From the sequence record NC_061449.1: a stretch of 64,000 bases of DNA; one strand, 5' to 3'. The position numbers and the translations under genes were made by a program. This document shows, one piece after another, positions 1,761-34,105 of the stretch. A model generated the notes under the pieces. That model worked only from the letters and a program-made list of their open reading frames with translations. It was not told where the DNA came from and searched no databases. How positions within the stretch are numbered: position 1 is the first letter of the stretch; each line of letters starts with the position of its first letter.

Positions 1761-2556
1761 GCGTTACGAAGGTCCGTACGGACTCGTCGAGTCCGACAAC
1801 ATGGTTCCTCGCTGGACGTACCCTGTTAAGCATGGACAGATACGCCGAGTAGAAGCGTGGGAACTTGATACAATGCCAAACACCACTATGCGTGTGCGTA
1901 TGGTGAATGACATTCATGCAATCCACAGTACACCTGTAGAGGAACACGATGACGACTCACTCGACCTCGACGAAGAAGCCGCAGCGATCTCAAAAACTGA
2001 GTCCCGACTTCTTATCAAGCCTCGACTCAATGAAGTCCGTTCCCGTAAAAATAAAGACCACGTTGGTCCAGAAAACGTCTTCACAGTCCCAGCCGAAGTA
2101 ATCGACGGTACACTGGACAGTGTTGACGAACACGCGCAGACGTTCCGTGACTATCTGCTGCATCAGGTATTCAGCCCGATACTTGGGTTTGATATTGCAG
2201 CCGGTGAAGTAGAAGCGATCTCGAAAGACTGCCTCAAAACAGACCTAGAGATTGACAGTGAGCTTGTGCCTTATATTGAGCGCGTAGGGCTTGCTAACAT
2301 CATCGGTGTGATGCTGTCTAAGTCGCAGTCAGTGCCTGAGTCTGTGCGCAGTGATGTGCTGAAAGACTGGCTAATCAAATCGTTTGATGACGTGCGAGCA
2401 GAGCACAAAGCGAAGACAGGCAGTAATACGTTACGTGCCCAACTTCGTCGCTTGATGCACGGTAACGACGAGCTGGTTGCTAAAGGTGCTGGCATAGGTA
2501 CAACCCGCGGATTTACTGAATACAGGAAGAAGCAGAACGAGAATGGCCAAGCCTAA
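1753..2556 (+). CDS. hypothetical protein (position would fit terminase small subunit)
   Basis: 267-aa ORF overlapping the terminase large subunit start; function inferred from position only. Confidence 0.55.
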   Translation: MSKRYEGPYGLVESDNMVPRWTYPVKHGQIRRVEAWELDTMPNTTMRVRMVNDIHAIHSTPVEEHDDDSLDLDEEAAAISKTESRLLIKPRLNEVRSRKNKDHVGPENVFTVPAEVIDGTLDSVDEHAQTFRDYLLHQVFSPILGFDIAAGEVEAISKDCLKTDLEIDSELVPYIERVGLANIIGVMLSKSQSVPESVRSDVLKDWLIKSFDDVRAEHKAKTGSNTLRAQLRRLMHGNDELVAKGAGIGTTRGFTEYRKKQNENGQA

Positions 2557-5371
2557 AAAAGGCCCAGCATTCACGATACGTCCGAAACGAATAGCTGCAT
2601 TCGATGCGCTGCTTGGTGACGACGTTAAGGCGGATGCCGCATCCGATATGGATTTCTTATCGGAGAATAGTTCGAGTGGGATTAACTTTCTCGAAAAGGG
2701 CGAGGTTAACATTGTTGACCTCGTTGAAGGTGCTTTAGAACAACGCACACTTGTGCCGCGTGATTTGAAGTTTGATGACAGTTCGATGCCCCGCGCCAAG
2801 AACTTCCTTGAGTGGTGTACTAGTCCAGACTTCTTAAAAGCCGACCCGTATCTCGAACAGGCCATGATTGGTCTGCGCTTGTTTGGTGAGATCTGCGTTA
2901 AGTGCTCACCGAACTTGCAATGGATGTACACTGAAAACCATGAGCCACAAGAAACGACAGCCGCGATAGAGACACACTTACACCTACTGCATAACGGTGT
3001 GTGCCCTCATTGCGGCGCTCGTCGTTCTGAGATGATTCGCAGAAAAGAGATGAACTTCTACAACGAGCTGGCTGTGAACGCCGGACAGCGTTGTGTGATT
3101 GCTTCAACTCCTGTGTTGACCTCTCGTGGTATCATGCCTATCGGACACATGATGATTGGTCATGACAGTCCTGGATTCCATAAGCCGCAGCGTAACTTCA
3201 ATGCGCACAACGGCCGTGAGATCAAGAACGTCAGCCAAGTCTACGTGTCAGATGAAGCACCAACCAAAGTCGTCACGCTCGCTAATGGCATGTGGATTGA
3301 AGCAACTCATGAGCACCCTGTGCGCACTGAGCAAGGCTTTAAGAAAGTGTCTAAGCTGCGTGGCGGTGAGCGTATCGAAATCAAACTCGGTACGAACTCG
3401 TGGGGCAAGATACAGCGTCCAGTCTCTATCTATGATGCTGGTCTATCTACGCGAGAAGAAGCGCTGCGTTATATTGCTGAACGTAGTGTGCCTCTTGGCG
3501 AAAAGATGCAGTACGTTACCGAAGACCCAGACGCACTTCAAATGGTGTGGTCGATTCTAATCAACGCTGGCCACATGCCGCAGATCGTTCACGGTACGCG
3601 CATGTGGAGCTTGGTGTATGACTTGACTGAACAACCCGAGTGCCGTTCTGTTCACGTCGAGGTAATCTCCGTTGATGATGGTACGCCGCAGGTCACGTAT
3701 GACTTGCAGATGGAAGGACTGCCGCAGTTCGTTGCGTCCGGCCTTGTGCATCACAACAGCGGGAAGTCGGTTGTAGTAGCGATGATCTCGACCTATCTGA
3801 CGCACAGACTGCTTATGTCGCAGTCGCCTACCGGCATCTTGGGCATCGACAGCACAACCGTATTGCACGGTACGTTCGTTGCCCTGACACAGAAGCAAGC
3901 GTCTGATACACTCTGGACTCCGTACTTCAACTACATCATGGGTAGTCCGTGGTTCCAAGCATATCATGATCTGATTCGCAAACACGAACGCCGTTACGGC
4001 ATCGAGGTGATGAAGATTCGTGATACGTTCGTTCTGTACGGACACAGGAACTTCGTTATCTACCCTGCCGGGCCTGATGGTCGTATTCTTCGTGGTCGAA
4101 CCCGTGTACTTGCGGTAATCGACGAAGTGGCGTATTTCGATAACGACGCCCAATCCAAGAAGATCAAAGTCAGTGCTGGTGCTGTGTACGGTGCACTTGA
4201 CCGTTCACTTGCAACTGTTCGTTCTGCCGAGATGCGGCAAGTCGAATCTGGTTATGATGAAGCATTCACGGGATATTTCTGTAACATCAGTAGTCCAGTT
4301 CACGCCCGTGATAAGATTAACGAATTGCTTCGTATGTCAGTAGGCTCTGAGAAGCTGCTGGGTATTCATGCTCCTACATGGAAGATGAACCCGACAATGC
4401 CTCGCACCTCTGAGTTCTTAGTCGAAGCGTTTCGTCGTGACCCGGTAGGTGCAGCCCGAGATTACGGAGCAGAAGCACCGTTGTCAGCTAACCCATTCAT
4501 CACGCAGCCTACGTTTATCTCAGATGCTATACGTGAGAAAGGTCGTTCGATGTGTACTTATACCCACCACATCATTCGACACAAAGACGGTGAACGCCAG
4601 CGCTATGGTAGTCTCGTCAAAGCGGCAACGACAACCAAAGCGTCGATACTTGCAATTGACGCAGGCTTCTCGAACAACAGCTTCGCACTCGTTACAGGCT
4701 CACGCGATGAAGCCGGTATTATCAGTGTCGATTGTCTGGTAGAGATCGTACCGAAGCCTGGCATCCCTCTGAACTACACCCTCATATTTGACGAGCTATT
4801 GATTCCGCTATGTCGTGCGCGTAACGTCCGCGTAATGCTTGCTGACCAGTGGCAGTCACTCAAGTTGTTGCAGGATGCAAAACTGAAAGTGGATTCCATT
4901 GAGGAGTCCGACCAGTACAGCTTGAAGTATCAGGATATGTGGACTGTTAAGACGATGTTCGAATCGCAGCCTAGTCGTATCAGTCTGCCTCGAATGACTC
5001 ACGCGAAAACTATCGCTGACACGTTGAAATACGACGGCGATGAATACCCTCAGTGCTTCGAGAACAAACCAACAGAGCACTTGATCATGCAGTTGCAGAC
5101 TGTGCAAGATACAGGCCGCAGCGTAATCAAGAACACAGGGGCAACCGATGACTTGTGGCGAGCAATGGCACTCATGGTCTACGGATTTGAGTGTGGTGAG
5201 TACGACGAGTATCTGACGAAAGCGCCAGAAGTCTCAGTCAACCGTGACCCGAATCGCTTGGGTCGCGTAGCGCATAGACTCAACTCAGGCTCTGCTGGTA
5301 GTTCACGACAGGCGCTCACTGGTGGTCGAGTTCTTGGTTCTGCTCGCACTCGAATGATTGGCCGTAAATAA
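2543..5371 (+). CDS. terL: terminase large subunit, intein-containing
   Basis: After removing the intein, Walker A reads NAGQR-SGKS; Walker B VIDEVAYF; nuclease motif LAIDAGFSNNSF; C-terminal DDLWRA; CxxC pairs in the N-terminal part. Confidence 0.85.
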   Translation: MAKPKKGPAFTIRPKRIAAFDALLGDDVKADAASDMDFLSENSSSGINFLEKGEVNIVDLVEGALEQRTLVPRDLKFDDSSMPRAKNFLEWCTSPDFLKADPYLEQAMIGLRLFGEICVKCSPNLQWMYTENHEPQETTAAIETHLHLLHNGVCPHCGARRSEMIRRKEMNFYNELAVNAGQRCVIASTPVLTSRGIMPIGHMMIGHDSPGFHKPQRNFNAHNGREIKNVSQVYVSDEAPTKVVTLANGMWIEATHEHPVRTEQGFKKVSKLRGGERIEIKLGTNSWGKIQRPVSIYDAGLSTREEALRYIAERSVPLGEKMQYVTEDPDALQMVWSILINAGHMPQIVHGTRMWSLVYDLTEQPECRSVHVEVISVDDGTPQVTYDLQMEGLPQFVASGLVHHNSGKSVVVAMISTYLTHRLLMSQSPTGILGIDSTTVLHGTFVALTQKQASDTLWTPYFNYIMGSPWFQAYHDLIRKHERRYGIEVMKIRDTFVLYGHRNFVIYPAGPDGRILRGRTRVLAVIDEVAYFDNDAQSKKIKVSAGAVYGALDRSLATVRSAEMRQVESGYDEAFTGYFCNISSPVHARDKINELLRMSVGSEKLLGIHAPTWKMNPTMPRTSEFLVEAFRRDPVGAARDYGAEAPLSANPFITQPTFISDAIREKGRSMCTYTHHIIRHKDGERQRYGSLVKAATTTKASILAIDAGFSNNSFALVTGSRDEAGIISVDCLVEIVPKPGIPLNYTLIFDELLIPLCRARNVRVMLADQWQSLKLLQDAKLKVDSIEESDQYSLKYQDMWTVKTMFESQPSRISLPRMTHAKTIADTLKYDGDEYPQCFENKPTEHLIMQLQTVQDTGRSVIKNTGATDDLWRAMALMVYGFECGEYDEYLTKAPEVSVNRDPNRLGRVAHRLNSGSAGSSRQALTGGRVLGSARTRMIGRK
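3092..3757 (+). mobile_element. intein (222 aa, mini or degenerate endonuclease) in the terminase Walker A motif
   Basis: Starts CVIASTPVLT (block A), block B ATHEHPV, ends GLVHHN followed by Ser +1. Confidence 0.9.
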
Positions 5372-12685: not shown

Positions 12686-13456
12686 ATGAGCAACGTTGAT
12701 AAAACAATGCCAGAAGGTCGCTGGGAGTTCAATGAGCCAGTTGCTGCTGTGTTCGATAACATGCTGCAAAACTCAATTCCTTCCTATGATCGTATGCGCG
12801 ATCTGACCTATCGTCTCGGTCGCCAGTTCGTAACTCCTGGTTCAGCTATCGTTGACCTGGGCGCTTCACTCGGCCGTGCTATCGAACCGTTCTGTGCTGA
12901 GTTCGGCGAGTACATGTATCTTCACGCTGCTGATCGTCCTGAGCCTGATCGTGAAGTTGGCAACATGTATTGCTGCTACGAGGTCGCGCCAGCAATGCTG
13001 GAGCGTCTGCGTGAAAACCCTGTGCTGAAAACGGCTAAAGCGAAAATCAGTAGCGAGTCGCTGGTGGAAGTAGACACGTTCCGCTTCGGCGAGCAGGTAG
13101 AGTGTTCGCTCATTCTGTCTGTGCTTACTCTCCAGTTCACGCCGATTGAGCACCGTCAGCACATTTTGGAGAAAGTGTACGACTCGTTGCAGAAAGGCGG
13201 TGCGTTCATTCTCGTTGAGAAAGTGTTGGGTGACGACAACTTCCTCGACCGTCTGCTTGTTGATACTTACTACGGCATGAAGGGCGACAACGGTTATTCG
13301 CAAGAGAGCATTGCGACGAAACGCAAAGCGCTTGAAGGTGTACTCGTACCTGTCAAGGCCGCGTGGAACGAAGAACTGCTGCGCAAAGCAGGCTTCGACC
13401 GCGTTGAATGTTTCTACCGCGATCTTAACTTCGCCGGATGGATCGCAATTAAGTAA
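12686..13456 (+). CDS. cmoA: carboxy-S-adenosyl-L-methionine synthase (CmoA family)
   Basis: WEFNEPVAAVFDNMLQNSIPSY, DLGASLG, TLQF, LVEK, NGYSQESIATKRKALEGV parallel E. coli CmoA ([51 protein letters not shown]), including the Arg199 equivalent. Confidence 0.9.
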   Translation: MSNVDKTMPEGRWEFNEPVAAVFDNMLQNSIPSYDRMRDLTYRLGRQFVTPGSAIVDLGASLGRAIEPFCAEFGEYMYLHAADRPEPDREVGNMYCCYEVAPAMLERLRENPVLKTAKAKISSESLVEVDTFRFGEQVECSLILSVLTLQFTPIEHRQHILEKVYDSLQKGGAFILVEKVLGDDNFLDRLLVDTYYGMKGDNGYSQESIATKRKALEGVLVPVKAAWNEELLRKAGFDRVECFYRDLNFAGWIAIK

Positions 13457-13463
13457 GGGAAGT

Positions 13464-14729
13464 ATGATGAAAGTAAACGGGCGTATCTTAGCAATCGTGC
13501 CACACAAGACCCTCCAGGACAGGACTAAGTCTGGTGTTGGTGCGTACATTGATGGACTTGAAGCGTACGGCTTCTGCGACTTCATCACTGACGGTGAAAA
13601 CAGCTCTGTCACCAAGAGCCTGTGGTTTAACTACGGTGATACCACTCTAAGCGACGGTTACAAAGTTGGTCACATCCAGAGTGCTCTGCTTGAAGCGCTC
13701 GACCGCATTCCGTATCGTGCAATTATTTGTAGCACCTACGAAGCTGTCGAAGCTGCTGTCGGTCTTGGTCTGCCTAAGATTATGCCCGTTTACTATCGTT
13801 CACACAACAGCTTCCTGTTAACGCAGGACCTGAATGGGCTTGGTGCTGAGAAGATGCACCGTGCGTTGCTGCAAGCGCCTGTGACTGGTCTGCGCATCTT
13901 AGCGAACTGTGATTCAACTGCGCGTGTGCTGTCTGAGATTTATAAAACTGAGGCTGCTGTCGCGTATAACGCATTCAGTGTATCTGACTACAATCCACCT
14001 GCGAAACGTAAACCTTCGCTGTTGATTATCTGTCGCTACGAAAAGGTTAAGCGTCCTGCGTTTGCTGCGCGTATCGCTGCTGCGTCTGGCTTACCTGTTC
14101 GTGTTATGACCGGCTCTGATCGTCAGGTCAAAAGCTGGGAGAAAGAGCTTGCTGATGCAGGCGTAAAAGATTACCAAGTCGTCAGTGGTTTGTCTGGTGA
14201 CGAGAAGATGGCGTTCATCGGACAATGTACCGTAGCGCTGTCATGTGCCGAAGTAGAGTCATTCGCTAACGGTGTGCGTGAGACTATCCCGTACTGCCCG
14301 ACGTTCGTTGTGCAAACTTCTAAGTACGATTGGGCGCGAGACTATACGCGCTTCTGCTCTGAGAACAAGCACATCCACATTCGCACTGTTGATCGTGTGA
14401 CTGCGAAAGAGGTGGAAGAACTGGGCAATGAGATTGCTTACTGGGCCCGCACCAAGTATCTGACTAAAGCTGAACGCGTTACGCTGCTGACCGAATGGTG
14501 CAAGCGCGTGGACAAAGGCTGGGCCGACTTCATGAAGAATGCAGTCGTGCCTGATGACGGCAAGCCGATGAAGACCGACCTGTCGAAAGAACTCGAAGAA
14601 AAAGGCGTAGTAGATTGGTCGAAGACGCAGACGTTAATGCGTACTGTAAAAGCTATACACAAGTGTCATGCTCGTATGGGCTTGACGTTCGATGGCACCA
14701 AAATCAAAACGAAAGGGAGGAAGAAATGA
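13464..14729 (+). CDS. GT-B fold glycosyltransferase (GT4-like)
   Basis: N-terminal SGVGAY, LLIICRYEKVKRP (R…K donor-binding pattern), ESFANGVRE (E-x7-E motif). Confidence 0.75.
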   Translation: MMKVNGRILAIVPHKTLQDRTKSGVGAYIDGLEAYGFCDFITDGENSSVTKSLWFNYGDTTLSDGYKVGHIQSALLEALDRIPYRAIICSTYEAVEAAVGLGLPKIMPVYYRSHNSFLLTQDLNGLGAEKMHRALLQAPVTGLRILANCDSTARVLSEIYKTEAAVAYNAFSVSDYNPPAKRKPSLLIICRYEKVKRPAFAARIAAASGLPVRVMTGSDRQVKSWEKELADAGVKDYQVVSGLSGDEKMAFIGQCTVALSCAEVESFANGVRETIPYCPTFVVQTSKYDWARDYTRFCSENKHIHIRTVDRVTAKEVEELGNEIAYWARTKYLTKAERVTLLTEWCKRVDKGWADFMKNAVVPDDGKPMKTDLSKELEEKGVVDWSKTQTLMRTVKAIHKCHARMGLTFDGTKIKTKGRKK

Positions 14730-15757
14730 GCGTGATTGGTGATATCTATAATATTCCGCAACCGTACGCGATGTTCTGTGGTAACGCCACGACGAAAGCA
14801 ATGGCGAAGATCACTGCCGGTATGGTTGAGTGGGCGTCAGAGAAAGTCTGCTGTGTAGTTGACGATGCTAATAACCTGTTCCCTGAAATGCCTCACGTTG
14901 AAATTCGTGACCTCAATAAGACCGATGCAGAAACTCTGGTCATCGGGTTTGCGCCTTTTGGCGGTCAGATTAACGAAGACATTGATCGCGCTATCTGCGA
15001 AGCATTGAAGCGTGGCCTGAACGTTGCTGCTGCTCTGCACGTCAAGCTGTCTGACAATCCTAAATACTTCGCTCTAGCTCGTGAGCATGGGGTATCGCTG
15101 TATGACTTCCGCCACCACCCTGAGCAATATCCTCTGGGCACTGGTCTTCCTCGTGCCGGTGTTCGTGTTCTTACTGTTGGTACTGACTGTTCGTGCGGTA
15201 AGAAATTTACTGCACTCGCACTGACTAAGAAGCTGACCGAGCTGAAACAGAAAGCTGTGTTCTGTGCTACCGGTCAAACTGGTTTTCTGATTAGCGGTCG
15301 CGGCATCAACAACGACACTGTGGTCGCTGACTTCCTTGCTGGTGCTGCTGAGTGGCTGTCACCTGCTGACGAAGAAGCTATCTATCTGATTGAAGGTCAA
15401 GGTGCGTTACGCCATCCGGCGTACACTGGTGGCAGCATGAGTCTGATTGCTGGCTCCCAGCCCGACGCTATCGTTGTCTGCCACACTGTTGGCCGTAACT
15501 TCATGATGAACACCGAGCGCGAGATCAACATCGTTGACGAGATCTCTGCTAATCTCGCTGCTGCCGCAATGCACGACTGGTACCCGAAAGTCGTCGGTAT
15601 CAGTATCAACTTCTGCGAAGTGAAGATGACGAAGAAAGAGCGCGAAGTATATTTGCGTAATCTTTCTAAAAGCAGTGGTTACGTGGCGTTTGACCCACAA
15701 GCTGGCGGTGAAGAGTTTGACCGTGTTGCGCACTACATCACGACGCTCAAACGCTGA
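14726..15757 (+). CDS. DUF1611 family protein (DgcN-like, P-loop)
   Basis: VLTVGTDCSCGKKFTALAL, ATGQTGFLI, DFLAGAAEWL, IEGQGALRHPAY, GSQPDAIVVCH; ATGA overlap with the GT gene. Confidence 0.85.
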   Translation: MSVIGDIYNIPQPYAMFCGNATTKAMAKITAGMVEWASEKVCCVVDDANNLFPEMPHVEIRDLNKTDAETLVIGFAPFGGQINEDIDRAICEALKRGLNVAAALHVKLSDNPKYFALAREHGVSLYDFRHHPEQYPLGTGLPRAGVRVLTVGTDCSCGKKFTALALTKKLTELKQKAVFCATGQTGFLISGRGINNDTVVADFLAGAAEWLSPADEEAIYLIEGQGALRHPAYTGGSMSLIAGSQPDAIVVCHTVGRNFMMNTEREINIVDEISANLAAAAMHDWYPKVVGISINFCEVKMTKKEREVYLRNLSKSSGYVAFDPQAGGEEFDRVAHYITTLKR

Positions 15758-16701
15758 TGAAAGTCTTAATCGACAATGCCGCGTTAGCGAGTAATGCGGC
15801 CTATTTAAAATCACTCGCTCCGTCCATGATTCCGGTTGTGAAAGGTAATTTCTACGGTCATGGTTTAGATTGTGTGAGAGCATTCTCCTTAGGGTTTGAG
15901 GTGCTCGCTGTCCATAGCGACCGCGAAGCACTTGCGCTGCGTGAACTCGAACTCGACCACACGCTGTTAATTCTCGGCGGTGTATACGGTCGCATGTGGA
16001 ATACAGTGCCTGTTCTGAACGCAAAGCAAGTCGGCAAGTATGAAGGACGATACGCTGTGTTTGCTGATTGGGGCTGTCGTCGCATCAACGTCAAGCCCGA
16101 AGATCTCACGCACCCACCCGCGTTGATTCTTGTTCACTCGGATGACTATCGTGTGCCTGTGTCTGAGTACGACGCTAATGAGATCGCACAACGCTACAAC
16201 GTGCCACTGTCTATGCTGTCTGTAGGCTCAAGCATGAACGTGCTCGATCAATATTCACCGAAGTTGAAACCTCGTGTCGGTATGGCAATTACCGGATATA
16301 GTAGCGATGAAACTGTGAACGGTAATTTGTGTGTAGCGAAGACAGTGCTTGCTCGTACCTGCGATAAGCTGGATGCGGGTCGAGTATTCGGTTACGGTGC
16401 GTTGGTGCCTAACAGCGCAGACAAGTTCCTGTACTCGATTGATGTTGGTTATTACGATAACCTGTATCAGTCCAACAAGAACACACCTGTGTATTGTCCT
16501 GATGCACCACATGCACAGGTCACGCTTCTCACAGGCGTTGCCAACGCAATCAGCATGAACCATGCCTTCGTATTGTCAGATATCGAGCTACCGTTTGACT
16601 CTGAGATTGAAATACTCGGACCTAACGTTCGCGCAGACTATCTGGCTAAACTCCACGGAACAACAACTGCGAATATTTTAAGGCTGGGTAATCATGGCTA
16701 A
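15757..16701 (+). CDS. alr: PLP-dependent amino-acid racemase (alanine racemase family)
   Basis: PVVKGNFYGHG (PLP Lys), EALALR, FGYGA (catalytic Tyr), GYYDN, ISMNH. Confidence 0.85.
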   Translation: MKVLIDNAALASNAAYLKSLAPSMIPVVKGNFYGHGLDCVRAFSLGFEVLAVHSDREALALRELELDHTLLILGGVYGRMWNTVPVLNAKQVGKYEGRYAVFADWGCRRINVKPEDLTHPPALILVHSDDYRVPVSEYDANEIAQRYNVPLSMLSVGSSMNVLDQYSPKLKPRVGMAITGYSSDETVNGNLCVAKTVLARTCDKLDAGRVFGYGALVPNSADKFLYSIDVGYYDNLYQSNKNTPVYCPDAPHAQVTLLTGVANAISMNHAFVLSDIELPFDSEIEILGPNVRADYLAKLHGTTTANILRLGNHG

Positions 16702-17563
16702 ACACGTTTTGCGCAAGCTGTTTGAACAGCACGTTAAAGCAGAGGTCAAAGATGACAAGGTGGCAGTGCTGCTGTCCAGTGGTCTTGACGGACTTGTTAG
16801 CGGGCTTGCTGCCCATGACTTAGGAAAGAAGGTACACGCCTTTACTTTCCAAATGGGCGACAACGAAAGTTTCGACAGCAAACACGCACGTAAAGTCGCA
16901 GAGAAGATGGGATGGGAGTTCACGCTTGTGAAAGTCCCTACGTCTGACAGCGCTATCGTACAGGGTTGGAAAGCGCTTCACGCGAAGTACCGTTGCGTTA
17001 AGAAGCGCGACTATGAGTGCGCATATCCTATGGTGTATTGCTACAAGGCAATCAAGGATGCAGGTTACAAGTATGTACTGAGCGGCCTTGTCGCTGATGC
17101 CTACTTCTGTTTTGCGCGTAACACTCACATCGCTAAAATCAGCGGACCGCACAGCGTACTCGAAAAGTTCGACGAGTACCGCAAAGCATATTGGGCACCG
17201 TGGTTCAAGAGCGGTAAGAAGTCTCTCGGCGTTGATGGATATAACCCTAGCGGTATGCTGCAACACGAAATGCTGTGCGACTCTTTCGGTCTGACGCACG
17301 TTAACCCGTGGCTGATAAAGAAAGTCCATGACTACTTCATTGGTCGTTCATGGCAAGAACTAAATCAACCCAAGCAGAAAATGCCAATAACAGAAGCATG
17401 GGCTGATCACATCGCGGTTGTAGGCCATCGCCCGCATCGCGGTTATCAAACAGAAGCTGGAGTACCTGCGTACTTCGAACGCTTACTGGATAATCCTGAG
17501 ATCAACTTCAACGGTCGCAAGCGTGTTATGGACCTTGCCCGTGATTGGTCAACGAGGACTTAA
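16694..17563 (+). CDS. asparagine-synthetase-like ATP-dependent amide ligase (synthetase domain only)
   Basis: VAVLLSSGLDG PP-loop, HAFTF…DSKHARKVAEKMG, YVLSGLVADAYF (cf. VLSGEGADELF); no N-terminal glutaminase domain. Confidence 0.8.
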   Translation: MAKHVLRKLFEQHVKAEVKDDKVAVLLSSGLDGLVSGLAAHDLGKKVHAFTFQMGDNESFDSKHARKVAEKMGWEFTLVKVPTSDSAIVQGWKALHAKYRCVKKRDYECAYPMVYCYKAIKDAGYKYVLSGLVADAYFCFARNTHIAKISGPHSVLEKFDEYRKAYWAPWFKSGKKSLGVDGYNPSGMLQHEMLCDSFGLTHVNPWLIKKVHDYFIGRSWQELNQPKQKMPITEAWADHIAVVGHRPHRGYQTEAGVPAYFERLLDNPEINFNGRKRVMDLARDWSTRT

Positions 17564-17564
17564 C

Positions 17565-18185
17565 ATGTTAGTACACATCATTGACGGAAACGTGGGCGGT
17601 AACTATGTGTTCCACAAGCTGCAAGAGTCTGGTATCAACGCGCGTGTCCATGCGCCTAGTGACCCACGCCGCCGTGCAGTAGCAGCAACCTACCCTTCGC
17701 TGTCTATGGGATTTACTCCCGAAGAGATCGAGAAGCATATCGGTAATGTGCTTGGCACCTATCGAGGCCTGTTCTTGATTAGCAGTTATGTAGGTTCGCT
17801 GGTGGCTCGTAGCATGATTGACCAGTGTGGTCAGAGTCATAACATCATTTATTGCGATGATCTACAGTGTGGGTCTATGCCTGTTGTTGCTTCCTCAATT
17901 TCTGTAAATGTATATCAGAAGCAACGACGACTCGGACGTATTGCAGGTAGACTCAAACACTTCGACCTCGACCACGAATTTATTATCGCTGATAAATCAG
18001 TGCGATTTGCGTCAGGTTCAGAGTTTGATGAACACGGCGCGCGTGAAGAACTGGACGATACGCCTAAGTTTCTATCGAGTCCGTCAATGATTGTTGCTGC
18101 ACACAAACTCGGTGTGAAGCGCAGCATGTATCACAACTATGCAGGTCTGGTGCGAGAGTTCCTTGAAAAGCGCCAGCAGCAATAA
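17565..18185 (+). CDS. hypothetical protein, possibly degenerate Asp/Glu racemase (MurI) fold
   Basis: N-terminus HIIDGNVGGNYV resembles MurI IFDSGVGGLSV; the canonical catalytic CNT is not present (ISSYVGS instead). Confidence 0.55.
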   Translation: MLVHIIDGNVGGNYVFHKLQESGINARVHAPSDPRRRAVAATYPSLSMGFTPEEIEKHIGNVLGTYRGLFLISSYVGSLVARSMIDQCGQSHNIIYCDDLQCGSMPVVASSISVNVYQKQRRLGRIAGRLKHFDLDHEFIIADKSVRFASGSEFDEHGAREELDDTPKFLSSPSMIVAAHKLGVKRSMYHNYAGLVREFLEKRQQQ

Positions 18186-20984: not shown

Positions 20985-21827
20985 ATGACCGTAATCAGTC
21001 CAATCCGTTATCAGGGCAATAAGCGAAGCCTTATCCCTCTTATTCTTGAGCACACACCAAGCGTACAAGACTGTCCGCGTATGGTCGATGTGTTTGGTGG
21101 TAGTGCCACTGTGTGCGCTAACATGCCTCAGAAGTTTCGTGTGTACAACGAGCTTAGTCCTCAGGTGTTTGAGATCGTTAAGATGCTGGTTGAGCAAGAC
21201 CCGAAGAAAACTCTCGGTCAAGTCAAGCGTCTGGTAAAACACTGGTGCCTGACAAACAGCAACGAAGCGAACTATGATGCGTTTCGAACTGTCGTCCAGA
21301 AGAAGCGTACACCGATATTGCATTACGTTGCACACAGACATGCGCACTCGAATATGCTGCGCTTCAACCAGCAGGGTGTGTACAACGTAGGCTTTGGTGA
21401 TCGTGGTCTGATTGGAAAGTTCGACGAGCTGGAGCACGAACTCACTACTTTCCACAGTCACATGCAGGGTGTCCACCTGACGAACATGAAGTACGGTAAG
21501 TTACTGAGTCGCTTAGGCCACCAACTGAACTACAACACGTTCTGTTACTTCGACCCGCCGTATCTGGCGAGCGGTGCAATGCAGTACGGCAAGTGGACTG
21601 AAACGAATGAGCGTAACCTGCTTGCTACTCTGGAGCAACTCAATCGCTTAGGCGTACCGTGGATGTTGAGCAACGTAACCGAACACCGACACTTCTCAAA
21701 CGATTTGTTGAAGCGCTGGTTAAAGAAACACGCAACGACCGTGTTGTACCCGAACAAAAGCTATGCGATGAACAATGGCCAGAGTGGCTCGCATGGTACT
21801 GTTGAAATTCTGGCAATGAACTACTGA
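20985..21827 (+). CDS. dam: DNA adenine methyltransferase (Dam / D12 class)
   Basis: SPIRYQGNKRSL, DVFGGSATV, YFDPPY; GATC specificity not established. Confidence 0.88.
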   Translation: MTVISPIRYQGNKRSLIPLILEHTPSVQDCPRMVDVFGGSATVCANMPQKFRVYNELSPQVFEIVKMLVEQDPKKTLGQVKRLVKHWCLTNSNEANYDAFRTVVQKKRTPILHYVAHRHAHSNMLRFNQQGVYNVGFGDRGLIGKFDELEHELTTFHSHMQGVHLTNMKYGKLLSRLGHQLNYNTFCYFDPPYLASGAMQYGKWTETNERNLLATLEQLNRLGVPWMLSNVTEHRHFSNDLLKRWLKKHATTVLYPNKSYAMNNGQSGSHGTVEILAMNY

Positions 21828-24044: not shown

Positions 24045-24550
24045 ACGAATTACCGATGAACCTCGATCAGGCTGAACACATCATGGCCAGTGTGTTTACG
24101 CTTGCTGGCGCATCGAAGTCTAAACGCCGCGCTACCGCTGCGATGTTGATTCACTTCCACAATGGCTTCCCTACTGTGATCAGTAGCGGTGTTAACGGTA
24201 CTGAGCCTGGTGCAAGCAACGTCATGGAGAACGAAGACCTGACTCTTTCTCTCGACACAGTTATCCATGCAGAGGTGAACTGCCTCAACCGCATGGAAGA
24301 ATACAGCATGTGGGCGAACGAAGAAGACATTCTGTTTTGCACCGACTCACCGTGCCCGAACTGTCTTGCTGACCTCGAAGCCGAAGGCGTTAAGACCGTT
24401 GTGTACGCGCGTGAGTATCGCCTGACTGATCATCTGGACGCATCTCCCATCAAGATGTTCTGTCTGGATATGGACAGCGTTGTCCAGCGTATGCAGCACG
24501 GCATCGACCGCATCAAAGAAGTGATCGCAACAACACCAGCGTCTAACTAA
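24029..24550 (+). CDS. dCMP deaminase-like zinc deaminase
   Basis: SSGVNGT, HAEVNC and SPCPNC zinc motifs, VVYAREYR. Confidence 0.85.
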   Translation: MRCNLNELPMNLDQAEHIMASVFTLAGASKSKRRATAAMLIHFHNGFPTVISSGVNGTEPGASNVMENEDLTLSLDTVIHAEVNCLNRMEEYSMWANEEDILFCTDSPCPNCLADLEAEGVKTVVYAREYRLTDHLDASPIKMFCLDMDSVVQRMQHGIDRIKEVIATTPASN

Positions 24551-27848: not shown

Positions 27849-28198
27849 TGCCTCCTGTAATTCGTTTCAACGAACAAACCTGCGAACTGCTGAAAAAGAC
27901 TTTCGGCATTGATTCACCTTTCATTGTCGTGCGTCGTGAGCGCATCATCGAAGACGGTAAGCCTTTCGGTGAGCGTGTCTATTTGAACAACGGCATTCAC
28001 ACCGTGACTGTGCCTAACGTACAGGGTCTCGACTTCGGCGATAAGCTGTATCTCGCCGAAGATATGGAAGTGTATGAGTGGCACCCGCACTTCGGCCTTC
28101 ATCCTACCATTCATCATTCTGTAAGCAATAACCAGAAGACTGCGCTCTCGTTCGGCCTTCATCCTATCATCTACCATAAAGACAGTCGGAACTCTTAA
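27848..28198 (+). CDS. hypothetical protein with duplicated C-terminal FGLHP motif
   Basis: 16-bp direct repeat TTCGGCCTTCATCCTA at 28091 and 28151. Confidence 0.6.
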   Translation: MPPVIRFNEQTCELLKKTFGIDSPFIVVRRERIIEDGKPFGERVYLNNGIHTVTVPNVQGLDFGDKLYLAEDMEVYEWHPHFGLHPTIHHSVSNNQKTALSFGLHPIIYHKDSRNS

Positions 28199-29298
28199 TG
28201 AACAAGCAACCTCTTGATCTGCGCGATCCAAATCAATACGAAGTTTACTCTCTGCACTGCGTAGACGAACAGTACATCAACCTAGGCAACGCTATTCTGG
28301 CGTGTGGTACTGACGAATCAGATCTCGGTCGCACCGAAGATACGTGGCGTACTCTGATTGGCGTCGGCTTCCAGTTGTCTAATACACTGATCGCTTTCCC
28401 TGCGCTGCTGTCTGCACGTAAGAACTGGTTCGCTGCTGTGGATGAAACCTGCTGGTTCATGCGCGGCGACACGAACATCAGCACTCTCCAGTCTAAAATC
28501 TGGAACGAATGGGCAGATGAAGAAGGCGAATGCGGTCCTATCTACGGTGAGATGTGGCGGCGCTGGCCTGACCTGAAAGCGTACTACGACTACACGCAAC
28601 CACAGCACTCTGAGCCTACTGCTGAGATGATTCGTGTGCGTAACGAAATCCTGCGTATGCGCGAAGACGGGTATATCGAAACGCAACTGACTGACGGGCG
28701 CATTCTGTTCGAAGGTCAGATTGACCAGTTCGCTAACGCACTGCATCAGGTTATGGCGCGTTCTCGCTCTCGTCGTATTCGCGTTCAGGCATTCAACCCT
28801 GCGTATCAGAACATGCAGGGTCTGCCTCCGTGTCACACCGAATTTGAGTTCAATGTGACTCAGCCTACTCAGTACGAGATCGCACAGATGGAAGCGCGCG
28901 GTATGGCTCCGTCTGACGCATCGTTGCATATCGTTGTGACCATGCGTTCCAATGATGTGCTGCTCGGGCGCCCGTTCAACATCATGGGCTACAGCGCGAT
29001 GCACCAACTGATTGCCAAGTGGGCTGGGTTGAACGTAGGTAGCTTTACGCTGAACACGACGAACACGCATCTGTATACGCATCACTTCGAAGCGTTCGAA
29101 CAGCAGAAGCAACAATGGGCGGCGCTCAGTGACCTGATGAAGAAAACTGGTCAGCCTATTCAATACCCGCTGCTCGAAATCAGCGACGACATTCTCGGCC
29201 TAACGCCAGAAGAGTTGCTGGACAACGCAACGGTCGAGTGGTTCCAACTTCTCGACTACTCCCCTGCACCAGCAGTCAAAGGGCGTGTTACCAAATGA
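28198..29298 (+). CDS. thyA: thymidylate synthase
   Basis: IWNEWADE…GPIYGEMWRRW, RR, LPPCH catalytic Cys, RSNDVLLGRPFNI, HLY. Confidence 0.92.
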   Translation: MNKQPLDLRDPNQYEVYSLHCVDEQYINLGNAILACGTDESDLGRTEDTWRTLIGVGFQLSNTLIAFPALLSARKNWFAAVDETCWFMRGDTNISTLQSKIWNEWADEEGECGPIYGEMWRRWPDLKAYYDYTQPQHSEPTAEMIRVRNEILRMREDGYIETQLTDGRILFEGQIDQFANALHQVMARSRSRRIRVQAFNPAYQNMQGLPPCHTEFEFNVTQPTQYEIAQMEARGMAPSDASLHIVVTMRSNDVLLGRPFNIMGYSAMHQLIAKWAGLNVGSFTLNTTNTHLYTHHFEAFEQQKQQWAALSDLMKKTGQPIQYPLLEISDDILGLTPEELLDNATVEWFQLLDYSPAPAVKGRVTK

Positions 29299-31263: not shown

Positions 31264-31974
31264 ATGGCAAAAACTGCTATCAAAGCAAAGGAAGGGAAAA
31301 AGAAAAAGAACGACGGACTAAAGTTTGAGTTGAAGAAACTCAACTCCGTCGCCCAGTTGAAAGGTGCAGCGTACAACCCACGCTTCATTACAGACAGTCG
31401 CCTGAAAGCGCTCGAAGGTTCTTTGGGTAGTTTCGGTGACCTGTCTGGTATCGTGTTCAACAACAACGTCAAATCGGGCGTGTTGATCTCTGGCCACCAG
31501 CGCCTGAAATCAATCGAGGGCTGGAAGACTCGCATCGAGGTCCAGAAGTCTGTTGATAAGCACGGTACAATCGGTCTGGGCTACATTCACGCAACGCATC
31601 CAAAGAAAGCTGATAAGGTGATCAGCATTCCTCTGCGTATCGTGAACTGGACCGATAAGAAAGCTGAGTATGCTGCAAACATCGCGGCGAACGCTCACGG
31701 CGGTGAGTTCGATAACAAGAAACTCGCCAAGCTGGTTGAACAGCTCGACCTCAACACAATCAAGCCTCAGTTACTTGGTCTTGACCCGTTAGAGATTCGC
31801 GGCCTGCAACAAAAGCTGAAAGTACAGGCTGTTGTGCAGGACGAAAAACGCGCTGGCAAGACTACCGGCCAGATGAACGGTAGTACCGGTAAGTTCAATG
31901 AGTACAACGCCGATGATGTTGGCGATACTCTGAACTGCACCTGCCCGCGCTGTGGATTTAAGTTCGAGGGATAA
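31264..31974 (+). CDS. ParB/sulfiredoxin-like N-terminal domain protein with C-terminal CPxCG zinc knuckle
   Basis: LKGAAYNPRFI…SLGSFG…LISGHQRLKSI; ends CTCPRCGFKFEG; directly upstream of the C5-MTase. Confidence 0.8.
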   Translation: MAKTAIKAKEGKKKKNDGLKFELKKLNSVAQLKGAAYNPRFITDSRLKALEGSLGSFGDLSGIVFNNNVKSGVLISGHQRLKSIEGWKTRIEVQKSVDKHGTIGLGYIHATHPKKADKVISIPLRIVNWTDKKAEYAANIAANAHGGEFDNKKLAKLVEQLDLNTIKPQLLGLDPLEIRGLQQKLKVQAVVQDEKRAGKTTGQMNGSTGKFNEYNADDVGDTLNCTCPRCGFKFEG

Positions 31975-31975
31975 T

Positions 31976-34105
31976 ATGATCATCAAGCCGCCTACGATGA
32001 AGGAAATCAACAAGCTGGATAAACCCTGGCGTGGTATGAGTTTCTTCGCAGGTTGCGGTGGTTCTTCTACCGGCCACAAGATGGCCGGTATCAACATCTT
32101 GCTGAGTAACGAGTTTGTTGACCCAGCAAGAGAGTCATATGAAGCGAACCACCCGACAACTAAAGTGCTGCCTCATGACATTCGCCGCCTCGATCCCGGT
32201 AAGCTGTTACGTTACTGCGGTCTCGATAAAGGCGAACTTGATTTACTTGACGGTAGTCCTCCATGCTTCACCGAAGACACTATCATTCATACAGCAGACG
32301 GCATGAAGTTCATCTCGGACATGAACGTCGGCGACAGAGCGATGACCAGTGTCGGGCAGTATTACCCCGTATACGACACAATGGTCAGACCGTATGTCGG
32401 TACGATGCACAAAGTTGAAACGCTGATCAGCAGTAACAAGGCGACGCCAGAGCATCCGTTCTTCGTTAGACGTGCTCTGGCCGAAGGTGGTTACTCTGAC
32501 CCGTTCTGGTGTGATGCGAAAGACGTGCAGGAAGGCGACTTGCTTGGCACTCCTCGAGTTACTCCAGACCAACAGCCGGGTGTGTATTACGATCAGATTG
32601 CGCAACTGCCTAAGACGATTCAGCAGTGGGTGAGCATTCCTGAGTTCTGGTGGATGGTGGGGCACTGGTGCGATCGGGGTTCAATCGAAACCGTTAGCGG
32701 CATTGAAGTCGTTAGCTTCGAATCGCATACCAGTCTTGAGAACGCGATGATTGAGCAGGCGTTTGACGCGCTCAAACTCAGTAGCCTGAATCGTATCGAC
32801 ACGATGACTGCGCAACGTAAAACGTTCCGTACTGTTATCGATGCAGAGCTGGTACAGTTCTTGCGTCGTTTCGTAAGTCAGGGCAACAACACGTTCTCCC
32901 GTCGTCTTCCTGCAATGATGTTCCACATGAGCGCCGAGCTGAAACAACAATTCATTCTCGGTTGTGCTGGGCATGACTATGTGACTGCTATGGGCACGGG
33001 TCTAGCGATCACATCAAGCAGCAAACGCTTCCTGCTTGAGCTTAACTACCTGTGCTGTTCTGCTTTCAATCGCCCTCTGTTTAACGGTATGATTTGGGGT
33101 GATGTTTACTTCGGTAGCACCATGACACCCCGCGAGCGTAACAGTTCGCGTGAGCATATAGGCTACCTGTTCCTGCAGGACGAGCACAACTTCTTCCACG
33201 AGTTCAGTGATAGCGATTCGCATCTCTGGACCGAAGTGATTGAGAACCTTGCGTATCAAGCAACGTGCGACGTGTACAATTTCTCTGTTGAAACAGACGA
33301 AACGTATGTGGCTAACGGTGTTGTAGTCCACAACTGCAAAGGCTTCTCGACTGCTGGTGTAAAAGAAGAAGGCTGGGGCAAAGAGGTTAAGTACAGCGAC
33401 AATAAATATCAGCAGGTGGATGACCTGTTCGATCAGTATTGTCGTATGCTGCAAGGCATGATGCCTAAGGTGTTCACGGCAGAAAACGTTAGTGGTCTTG
33501 TGAAGGGGATCTCGAAAGGGTATTTCCTTGAGATCATGAAGACGTTCGACAAGCTCGGTTATTATGTACGAGCGCCAATGCTGAATGCCTGTTGGCTAGG
33601 TGTACCTCAGTCGCGTGAGCGTATCATCTTCATGGGTGTGCGTAAAGACATAGCCCATGCGCTTGGCTATAAGTCGGCTCGCGAGGCTGTGCCTGATGTT
33701 ATCCCGTGCGATACGCAAGCCTTCCTGGGTGATGCGTTGCCTCACATCTTACGATACAAGACGACGCAGAAAGACCTGATCAAGTATCTGCCTGCAATTA
33801 ACGGACCGATGCCTACGATTACAGCGTCTGATGCAATCGCGTATGAAACCGCGCGTTTCTCGTCTGCTGGGTTTATCGAAGATAACAAAGGCCATCGCCG
33901 TAAACTGACCATCGACGAACTGCTGGTAGTATCTGGAATGCCGTCTGACTATAAGCTGGTTGGCAAATTCGAAGAACAGTGGGAACGTCTTGGTCGTGTC
34001 TGTGTGCCAGCAATGACACACGCAGCATCGAAGGCTTTCATCGAACATATTCTTTTGCCTTACGCGAAGAAGAAAAAGAAAAAGCCCGGCGATATATTTA
34101 AATAA
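31976..34105 (+). CDS. C5-cytosine DNA methyltransferase family, intein-split; candidate carboxymethyltransferase
   Basis: Motif I FFAGCGG, IV GSPP-C (split by intein), VI AENV, VIII QSRERI, IX RKLTIDEL, motif X ERLGRVCVP (Arg where GN[AS]V has Asn); ATG at 31976 after GAGGG. Confidence 0.9.
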   Translation: MIIKPPTMKEINKLDKPWRGMSFFAGCGGSSTGHKMAGINILLSNEFVDPARESYEANHPTTKVLPHDIRRLDPGKLLRYCGLDKGELDLLDGSPPCFTEDTIIHTADGMKFISDMNVGDRAMTSVGQYYPVYDTMVRPYVGTMHKVETLISSNKATPEHPFFVRRALAEGGYSDPFWCDAKDVQEGDLLGTPRVTPDQQPGVYYDQIAQLPKTIQQWVSIPEFWWMVGHWCDRGSIETVSGIEVVSFESHTSLENAMIEQAFDALKLSSLNRIDTMTAQRKTFRTVIDAELVQFLRRFVSQGNNTFSRRLPAMMFHMSAELKQQFILGCAGHDYVTAMGTGLAITSSSKRFLLELNYLCCSAFNRPLFNGMIWGDVYFGSTMTPRERNSSREHIGYLFLQDEHNFFHEFSDSDSHLWTEVIENLAYQATCDVYNFSVETDETYVANGVVVHNCKGFSTAGVKEEGWGKEVKYSDNKYQQVDDLFDQYCRMLQGMMPKVFTAENVSGLVKGISKGYFLEIMKTFDKLGYYVRAPMLNACWLGVPQSRERIIFMGVRKDIAHALGYKSAREAVPDVIPCDTQAFLGDALPHILRYKTTQKDLIKYLPAINGPMPTITASDAIAYETARFSSAGFIEDNKGHRRKLTIDELLVVSGMPSDYKLVGKFEEQWERLGRVCVPAMTHAASKAFIEHILLPYAKKKKKKPGDIFK
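32264..33334 (+). mobile_element. intein (357 aa) with degenerate LAGLIDADG-like region, inserted at the catalytic Cys
   Basis: Starts CFTEDT, block B ATPEHPFFV, block F/G VYNFSVETDETYVANGVVVHN, +1 residue Cys (the catalytic PC Cys). Confidence 0.92.

Follow-up and report, generated by a model that had tools for sequence, protein, structure and literature searches.

The 64,000-nucleotide stretch analyzed here (the window; bases 1-64000 of Erwinia phage pEa_SNUABM_17, NC_061449.1 / MZ443777.1, a 263,916-bp Alexandravirus) contains a gene, gp049, whose product is very probably a DNA carboxymethyltransferase dependent on carboxy-S-adenosylmethionine (Cx-SAM) and orthologous to CmoX of Synechococcus phage S-B43. 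This assignment is based on homology, residue equivalence, gene content, and conservation, from which we infer activity, splicing, target sequence, and product. The gp049 region matches this phage record at 100% identity and with unchanged coordinates. In RefSeq the gene is labeled 'hypothetical protein' only. An earlier note had pointed to an arginine in motif X of this cytosine-C5 methyltransferase (C5-MTase), where an asparagine is nearly invariant, and had proposed from this residue and a CmoA gene in the same genome that carboxymethyl rather than methyl groups are transferred. This proposal is correct in substance, and its principle had already been published in December 2025 (PMC12783734). 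What goes beyond that publication is an intein inserted exactly before the catalytic cysteine and an extended module of accessory genes. The gene and the segments on which its assignment depends are the following:

31976..34105, + strand: gp049, cmoX precursor gene, 709 aa, with an intein-interrupted C5-MTase fold (Pfam DNA_methylase, E 2.3e-36; Intein_splicing; Hint_2)
31976..32263, + strand: N-extein, 96 aa, with motif I FAGCGGSS, cofactor-binding F24, E46, F47, and D68, and the end ...LLDGSPP
33335..34105, + strand: C-extein, 256 aa plus stop, beginning with TGC at 33335-33337 (CKGFSTAG...)
33482-33490, + strand: ENV in the C-extein (E146 of the mature enzyme)
33608-33622, + strand: QSRER in the C-extein, with R547 and R549 of the precursor (R190/R192 of the mature enzyme)
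33995..33997, + strand: CGT, Arg674 of the gp049 precursor and Arg317 of the 352-aa spliced enzyme, at the motif X Asn position

The start codon is the ATG at 31976, in agreement with the N-termini of the homologs. As the earlier note had read it, the CGT codon lies in frame with gp049 in the context cag tgg gaa cgt ctt ggt CGT gtc tgt gtg cca, translated as QWERLGRVCVP.

The characterized member of the family, CmoX of phage S-B43 (SpCmoX), was described by Yang et al. (Nat Commun, 7 Dec 2025; PMC12783734). It acts on double-stranded DNA, accepts Cx-SAM only, and makes 5-carboxymethylcytosine (5cxmC). In the 1.9 Å structure Arg350 replaces Asn304 of HhaI and contacts the carboxymethyl group, and the R350N variant is inactive with both S-adenosylmethionine (SAM) and Cx-SAM (PMC12783734). 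Thus, the Arg-to-Asn revertant suggested in the earlier note would be a poor test, since loss of activity rather than formation of 5-methylcytosine (5mC) is to be expected. In S-B43, Cx-SAM is supplied by the phage's own CmoA, and glycine is attached in a further step by CmoY, a ligase resembling asparagine synthetase; ~10% of the cytosines in native phage DNA are present as the glycine amide of 5cxmC. The same study defined 5,615 database candidates by SPPC and R350, often located near CmoA, a ligase, and a ParBc protein, and likened the arginine to the engineered N374K exchange in M.MpeI (PMC12783734). A search of its text and supplements found no Erwinia phage named, and in the supplements no occurrence of SNUABM, Dickeya, intein, racemase, or jumbo.

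Which residue the arginine replaces was derived from several alignments. When the spliced protein was searched with phmmer against the sequences of the whole PDB, the best match was 8YF3 (SpCmoX; PDB title 'DNA cytosine C5-carboxymethyltransferase in complex with Cx-SAM') with E 2.5e-58, followed by M.HaeIII with E 1.2e-17. Both phmmer and BLASTP set Arg317 on SpCmoX Arg350 (ERLGRVCVP against ERVGRMVPP). Counting along the chain in 8YF3 puts the aligned arginine at 350, and the same numbering yields the F25, E47, F48, D69, and C98 named in PMC12783734. The BLASTP alignment with S-B43 CmoX covers the full length (353 residues, 35% identity, E 5e-67). Furthermore, in the phmmer run Arg317 fell on the asparagine of DNMT1 'VGNAVPP', and a family profile built from 87 members, aligned over the full length with both M.HhaI and M.HaeIII, placed the arginine on M.HhaI N304 (QFGNSVV) and on the corresponding asparagine of M.HaeIII (IGNAVP). 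The positional equivalence to N304 on which the earlier note relied was found by this profile, for which 8YF3 again was the top match in the PDB (E 2.6e-104); the C-terminal 58 aa of gp049 searched alone matched 8YF3 only. M.MpeI (4DKJ) was matched by phmmer over residues 87-211 only (E 7e-7).

An AlphaFold2 (AF2) model of the spliced protein, built from an alignment that excluded the S-B43 sequence, led to the same relative. The model reached a predicted local distance difference test score (pLDDT) of 93.5 and a predicted template modeling score (pTM) of 0.92, and its top Foldseek match in the PDB was 8YF3 (E 1.4e-26, template modeling (TM) score 0.74/0.78), ahead of HaeIII and HhaI. With M.HhaI and M.HaeIII the protein shares the catalytic architecture, a full-length profile alignment, and Foldseek TM scores of ~0.67-0.75. 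Unlike gp049, these enzymes have an asparagine (N304 in HhaI), transfer methyl groups in a SAM-dependent manner, and possess neither an intein nor a CmoA partner. Wang and Kohli reportedly engineered the CpG carboxymethyltransferase M.MpeI N374K in 2021. There, as in gp049, a basic residue takes the place of the motif X asparagine, which in M.MpeI enables use of Cx-SAM; however, M.MpeI N374K is an engineered and distant relative that has a lysine instead of an arginine, still uses SAM, and targets CG.

The correspondence to SpCmoX extends to the remaining residues of the active site. F25, E47, F48, D69, and C98 of SpCmoX equal F24, E46, F47, D68, and C97 in spliced gp049; in the family alignment F24, E46, and D68 do not vary, and F47 hardly varies. 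The E, N, and V of ENV and both arginines of QSRER are invariant in two family alignments. The glutamate and arginine that contact cytosine N4 and O2 in CmoX enzymes are present as E146 and R190/R192. The SPPC motif is found as S94 P95 P96 C97, only if splicing occurs, as SPP ends at 32263 and the cysteine is encoded at 33335-33337. All sequence-level features that define the CmoX family are therefore found in gp049. The protein resembles SpCmoX in fold, in SPPC, in the arginine at the R350 position, and in the cofactor-contacting F/E/F/D residues, but differs from it by an overall identity of 35% and a diverged target-recognition region, so that GC specificity cannot be assumed.

Conservation was counted in 121 aligned sequences, consisting of the 120 nearest database homologs and the query. 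The key column contained arginine in 116 sequences, asparagine in four, and methionine in one. In a maximum-likelihood tree the asparagine-bearing homologs (P0057, P0065, P0071, P0102) and the methionine-bearing one (P0024) are isolated tips within the arginine-type clade. These five members may have reverted naturally to methyl transfer or may be inactive copies. The contigs of the asparagine-type homologs are only 5-6 kb long; ParB-like genes are present on them, and no CmoA or CmoY was detected. A sequencing error or a lineage-specific oddity as the source of the arginine was rejected, as all 45 related phage records have the residue and its conservation spans five genera. These 45 jumbo-phage records span at least 80% of the 2.3-kb gp049 query, and the open reading frame (ORF) is intact in all of them.

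These data also bear on the possibility that gp049 is an ordinary SAM-dependent 5mC methyltransferase in which motif X tolerates the arginine. In favor of this, none of the canonical C5-MTase motifs I, IV, VI, and VIII is damaged, and the four asparagine-bearing proteins scattered in the same clade indicate that the position can change. Against this speak the near-invariance of the arginine in the 121 sequences and the fact that the nearest characterized relative takes Cx-SAM only. Furthermore, the phage CmoA and the CmoY-like ligase described below would otherwise be without a substrate. We therefore regard an ordinary methyltransferase as very unlikely.

The gene content of the window is in agreement with carboxymethyl transfer by gp049. 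It includes three partner genes of cmoX:

12686..13456, + strand: gp017, CmoA homolog (carboxy-SAM synthase; SAM + prephenate -> Cx-SAM; TIGR00740, E 2.2e-42)
16694..17563, + strand: gp021, CmoY-like AMP-forming amide ligase of the asparagine-synthetase C-domain family (Pfam Asn_synthase, E 8e-15)
31264..31974, + strand: gp048, ParB-like protein with its stop 1 nt before the cmoX ATG (PHROG 620 'ParB-like partition protein', E 3.8e-32)

The CmoA gene that the earlier note had placed in this genome is gp017, labeled 'tRNA methyltransferase' in RefSeq. Besides its TIGR00740 match it is similar to E. coli CmoA (4GEK, E 5.8e-30) and to SpCmoA (30% identity, E 1e-28); the experimentally active SpCmoA itself is just 27.9% identical to E. 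coli CmoA. Taken with the alignment of the arginine to N304 and to SpCmoX Arg350, the presence of this gene in the window supports by homology the carboxymethyl transfer that the note had proposed. The gp021 product shares 34% identity with SpCmoY over 276 aa (E 2e-53). For gp048 there was no ParBc match in Pfam at E <=0.01, and its identification came from PHROGs; RefSeq likewise has a 'ParB-like partition protein' directly upstream of gp049. The MTase genes of Y3, Yoloswag, fHe-Yen9-02, PaBG, and metagenome contigs are likewise directly preceded by a ParB-like homolog. Thus, pEa_SNUABM_17 resembles S-B43 in possessing a phage CmoA, an asparagine-synthetase-like ligase, and a ParB-like neighbor. 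In contrast to S-B43, its cmoX contains an intein at the catalytic cysteine and lies ~18.5 kb from cmoA and cmoY, and three extra genes (GT-B-like, DgcN-like, and racemase-like) are located between cmoA and cmoY.

In a rival explanation CmoA has a function in tRNA metabolism: the phage enzyme would serve cmo5U34 formation in tRNA together with host CmoB, and gp049 would be unrelated, with a different substrate, for instance RNA or a nucleotide. The RefSeq label of gp017 and the ~18.5 kb between cmoA and cmoX fit this explanation, and in PaBG tRNA genes lie within 5 kb of the cluster. However, no tRNA genes were found in the 64-kb window, which weakens a tRNA-related role of CmoA, and cmoA adjoins cmoX and cmoY in PaBG, in L015, and in S-B43. 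In contig L018 an intein-bearing cmoX is directly followed by the accessory genes that in the window follow cmoA, and the substrate of SpCmoX is double-stranded DNA. A tRNA-directed CmoA with an unrelated gp049 is thus highly improbable. In contigs L014 and L016, which carry arginine-type enzymes, no CmoA was detected within ±10 kb of cmoX, which fits the separation seen in the window itself.

The earlier note had referred to a spliced enzyme, and gp049 indeed is interrupted by an intein, as indicated by the Pfam matches and by comparison with intein-free orthologs:

32264..33334, + strand: intein, 357 aa, with Cys1 (CFTEDT...), block B TPEH, C-terminal ...VVVHN, and a middle domain of ~220 aa between the HINT halves

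The intein-free orthologs of PaBG, S-B43, and the homolog P0001 lack exactly residues 97-453 of gp049. The identical insertion site is occupied in AD1 (Alexandravirus), Y3 (Sasquatchvirus), Yoloswag, Yersinia phage fHe-Yen9-02, and the metagenomic sequences P0006, P0030, and L018, of which P0030 has a mini-intein of ~155 aa. Nine intein-bearing homologs have Cys1, TxxH, the HN at the end, and the +1 Cys in common, and these residues are kept in five phage lineages. The first cysteine of the C-extein (33335-33337) is both the +1 nucleophile of the intein and the catalytic cysteine of motif IV (SPP|C); hence, the precursor presumably cannot be active before splicing. A literature search returned nothing on inteins in phage cytosine methyltransferases.

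Another possibility is that the intein no longer splices, which would leave gp049 dead or conditionally silent, with no active enzyme formed. The intein does interrupt the catalytic motif, its Pfam score is marginal (Intein_splicing 34.7 bits at a cut-off of 35.8; Hint_2 and PT-HINT weaker), and no homing endonuclease family was recognized in it. On the other hand, the splicing residues are kept in Alexandravirus, Sasquatchvirus, Yoloswagvirus, the Yersinia phage, and metagenomic relatives, all 45 related phage records have an undisrupted ORF, and extein and intein evolve at a ratio of nonsynonymous to synonymous substitution rates (dN/dS) of ~0.1. In comparisons of pEa_SNUABM_17 with AD1 or Y3 the dN/dS of the intein, middle domain included, was 0.09-0.12, and the exteins had the same values. 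This equality argues for an intein that is maintained and not decaying, and we give hardly any weight to a gene inactivated by its intein.

The ~220-aa middle domain, placed at approximately 32834..33493, had no Pfam or PDB family match and may be an unrecognized type of homing endonuclease or have some other function; against the PDB the intein as a whole had one marginal, bacterial intein-like match (E 0.18). Other class 1 inteins are known from the active sites of enzymes, among them phage terminases, helicases, and ribonucleotide reductases. The gp049 intein is like these in having Cys1, TxxH, HN, the +1 Cys, and a large central domain and in being inserted in the most conserved catalytic motif. 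It differs from them in its host, a CmoX-type enzyme in which the +1 Cys doubles as the transferase nucleophile, and in a middle domain that matches no known homing endonuclease family. Within the window, the terminase large subunit gp004 (2543..5371, 942 aa) is of unusual length, and its residues 226-405 weakly match Intein_splicing (E 1e-4). The window would then encode a second intein, in line with reports of inteins in the terminases of PaBG-like phages (PMC7412058).

Several observations weigh against the assignment of gp049 as a functional CmoX. The TIGR00740 score of gp017 (145.4 bits) remains below the NCBIfam equivalog cut-off of 193.3 bits, although the homology itself is clear. The ~18.5 kb between cmoX and the genes cmoA and cmoY differ from the adjacent arrangement in S-B43 and PaBG. 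The Pfam intein score lies just below its cut-off, and splicing of gp049 is a prediction. The target-recognition region aligns poorly with that of SpCmoX. Finally, a literature search found no biochemistry or DNA composition reported for pEa_SNUABM_17 or any other Alexandravirus, and nothing on DNA modification in Alexandravirus, Y3, AD1, or PaBG.

From the assignment of gp049 as a CmoX ortholog the following pathway can be proposed. The 709-aa precursor would excise the 357-aa intein, joining ...GSPP to CKGFS... and thereby creating the motif IV cysteine. The phage CmoA gp017 would convert SAM and prephenate to carboxy-SAM. The mature 352-aa enzyme would flip the target cytosine out of the helix, Cys97 would attack C6, and the carboxymethyl group of Cx-SAM would be transferred to C5, with Arg317, in place of the motif X asparagine, pairing with the carboxylate of the cofactor. 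The resulting 5cxmC in phage DNA would then be amidated by the CmoY-like ligase gp021, and further elaboration by the glycosyltransferase (GT)-like, DgcN-like, and racemase-like neighbors is possible. The pathway would end in a hypermodified cytosine protecting the phage DNA from nucleases of the host.

The genes between cmoA and cmoY, together with a gene following the ligase gene, are:

13467..14729, + strand: gp018, GT-B-fold glycosyltransferase-like protein with a putative accessory role (predicted fold)
14726..15757, + strand: gp019, DUF1611/DgcN-like accessory protein (Pfam DUF1611, E 4.8e-49)
15757..16701, + strand: gp020, alanine/serine-racemase-like, pyridoxal-phosphate-type (PLP) accessory protein (Pfam Ala_racemase_N, E 1e-9)
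17565..18185, + strand: gp022, conserved hypothetical protein after the ligase gene (homologs after the ligase region in AD1 and Y3)

No Pfam, NCBIfam, or PHROG match was found for gp018. Its homolog P0126 (40% identical) has a weak Glycos_transf_1 match, and the AF2 model of gp018 (pLDDT 82) has a GT-B fold with GT4-type glycosyltransferases as top PDB matches (E ~1e-10). The NCBIfam DgcN match of gp019 (E 7e-89) reaches 298 bits, below the 480-bit cut-off; homologs in the phage collection occur in Alexandravirus only and always after cmoA. For gp020 the NCBIfam alr and VanT matches are below their cut-offs, and PDB alanine racemases are matched with E 7e-6. The gp022 product has homologs in AD1 (89% identity) and Y3 (59%) and no family match in Pfam, NCBIfam, or PHROG.

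The content of this slot varies among relatives. It comprises cmoA, DUF1611, and ligase in AD1, and cmoA, a divergent asparagine synthase, and, slightly further, an 'oxygenase' in Y3; the order in PaBG is ParB, cmoX, cmoA, a hypothetical gene, and ligase. Two divergent metagenomic contigs contain larger sets: CmoA, a small ORF, GT-like, DUF1611, racemase-like, CmoY, and 3-deoxy-D-arabino-heptulosonate 7-phosphate (DAHP) synthase in L017, and ParB, intein-bearing CmoX, GT-like, DUF1611, and CmoY in L018. This argues for accessory genes that are part of the modification pathway and for a final base other than the glycine amide of S-B43. The conserved GT-like/DgcN-like/racemase-like set between cmoA and cmoY suggests a different final base, and the variation of the slot among relatives suggests diversification of the final cytosine hypermodification. 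More tentatively, and with somewhat less than even confidence, we propose that the cmoA-GT-DgcN-racemase-cmoY set of the Alexandravirus type could build a new, larger hypermodified cytosine, e.g. a 5cxmC whose amide partner is an amino acid other than glycine (possibly a D- or hydroxy-amino acid) and which is subsequently glycosylated or acylated; the CmoX intein would then be a post-translational switch by which DNA modification is delayed or made conditional.

Some further observations concern these genes and their surroundings. In L017 (SRR26596593_43232) the DAHP synthase (PF00793; 12162..13025) lies directly after the CmoY homolog. DAHP synthase is the first enzyme of the shikimate pathway, upstream of prephenate, the co-substrate of CmoA. 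The L017 phage may boost the Cx-SAM supply by this enzyme. Between Y3 and pEa_SNUABM_17, CmoA is 87% and CmoX 73% identical, whereas the ligases (Y3: L005 1938..2810, 'asparagine synthase', compared with 16694..17563 of the window) can hardly be aligned (34% over 109 aa). It seems that these phages, otherwise syntenic, differ by a swap of the ligase gene. The window also encodes a 366-aa thymidylate-synthase-family protein with large insertions (gp044, 28198..29298; 341 residues matched to 264 Pfam profile positions), a deoxycytidine monophosphate (dCMP) deaminase (gp035, 24056..24550), and a Dam-like D12 N6-adenine DNA methyltransferase (gp030, 20985..21827). The same trio is also found upstream of cmoX in L014 and L016.

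The assignment of gp049 would extend the 5cxmC modification system to many culturable jumbo phages of plant-associated enterobacteria. The group with this system would include Alexandravirus, Sasquatchvirus, Yoloswagvirus, a Yersinia phage, and Pseudomonas phage PaBG, whose genes are currently labeled 'hypothetical protein', 'tRNA methyltransferase', or 'DNA cytosine methylase' in the databases. DNA modified in this way would likely resist many restriction enzymes and may affect sequencing and cloning of phages developed for fire blight biocontrol. The variable accessory genes between cmoA and cmoY would provide a tractable route to new amide-linked cytosine hypermodifications, an open question in PMC12783734. 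The intein at the catalytic cysteine would represent a natural case of splicing-gated activity and could serve as a switchable carboxymethyltransferase.

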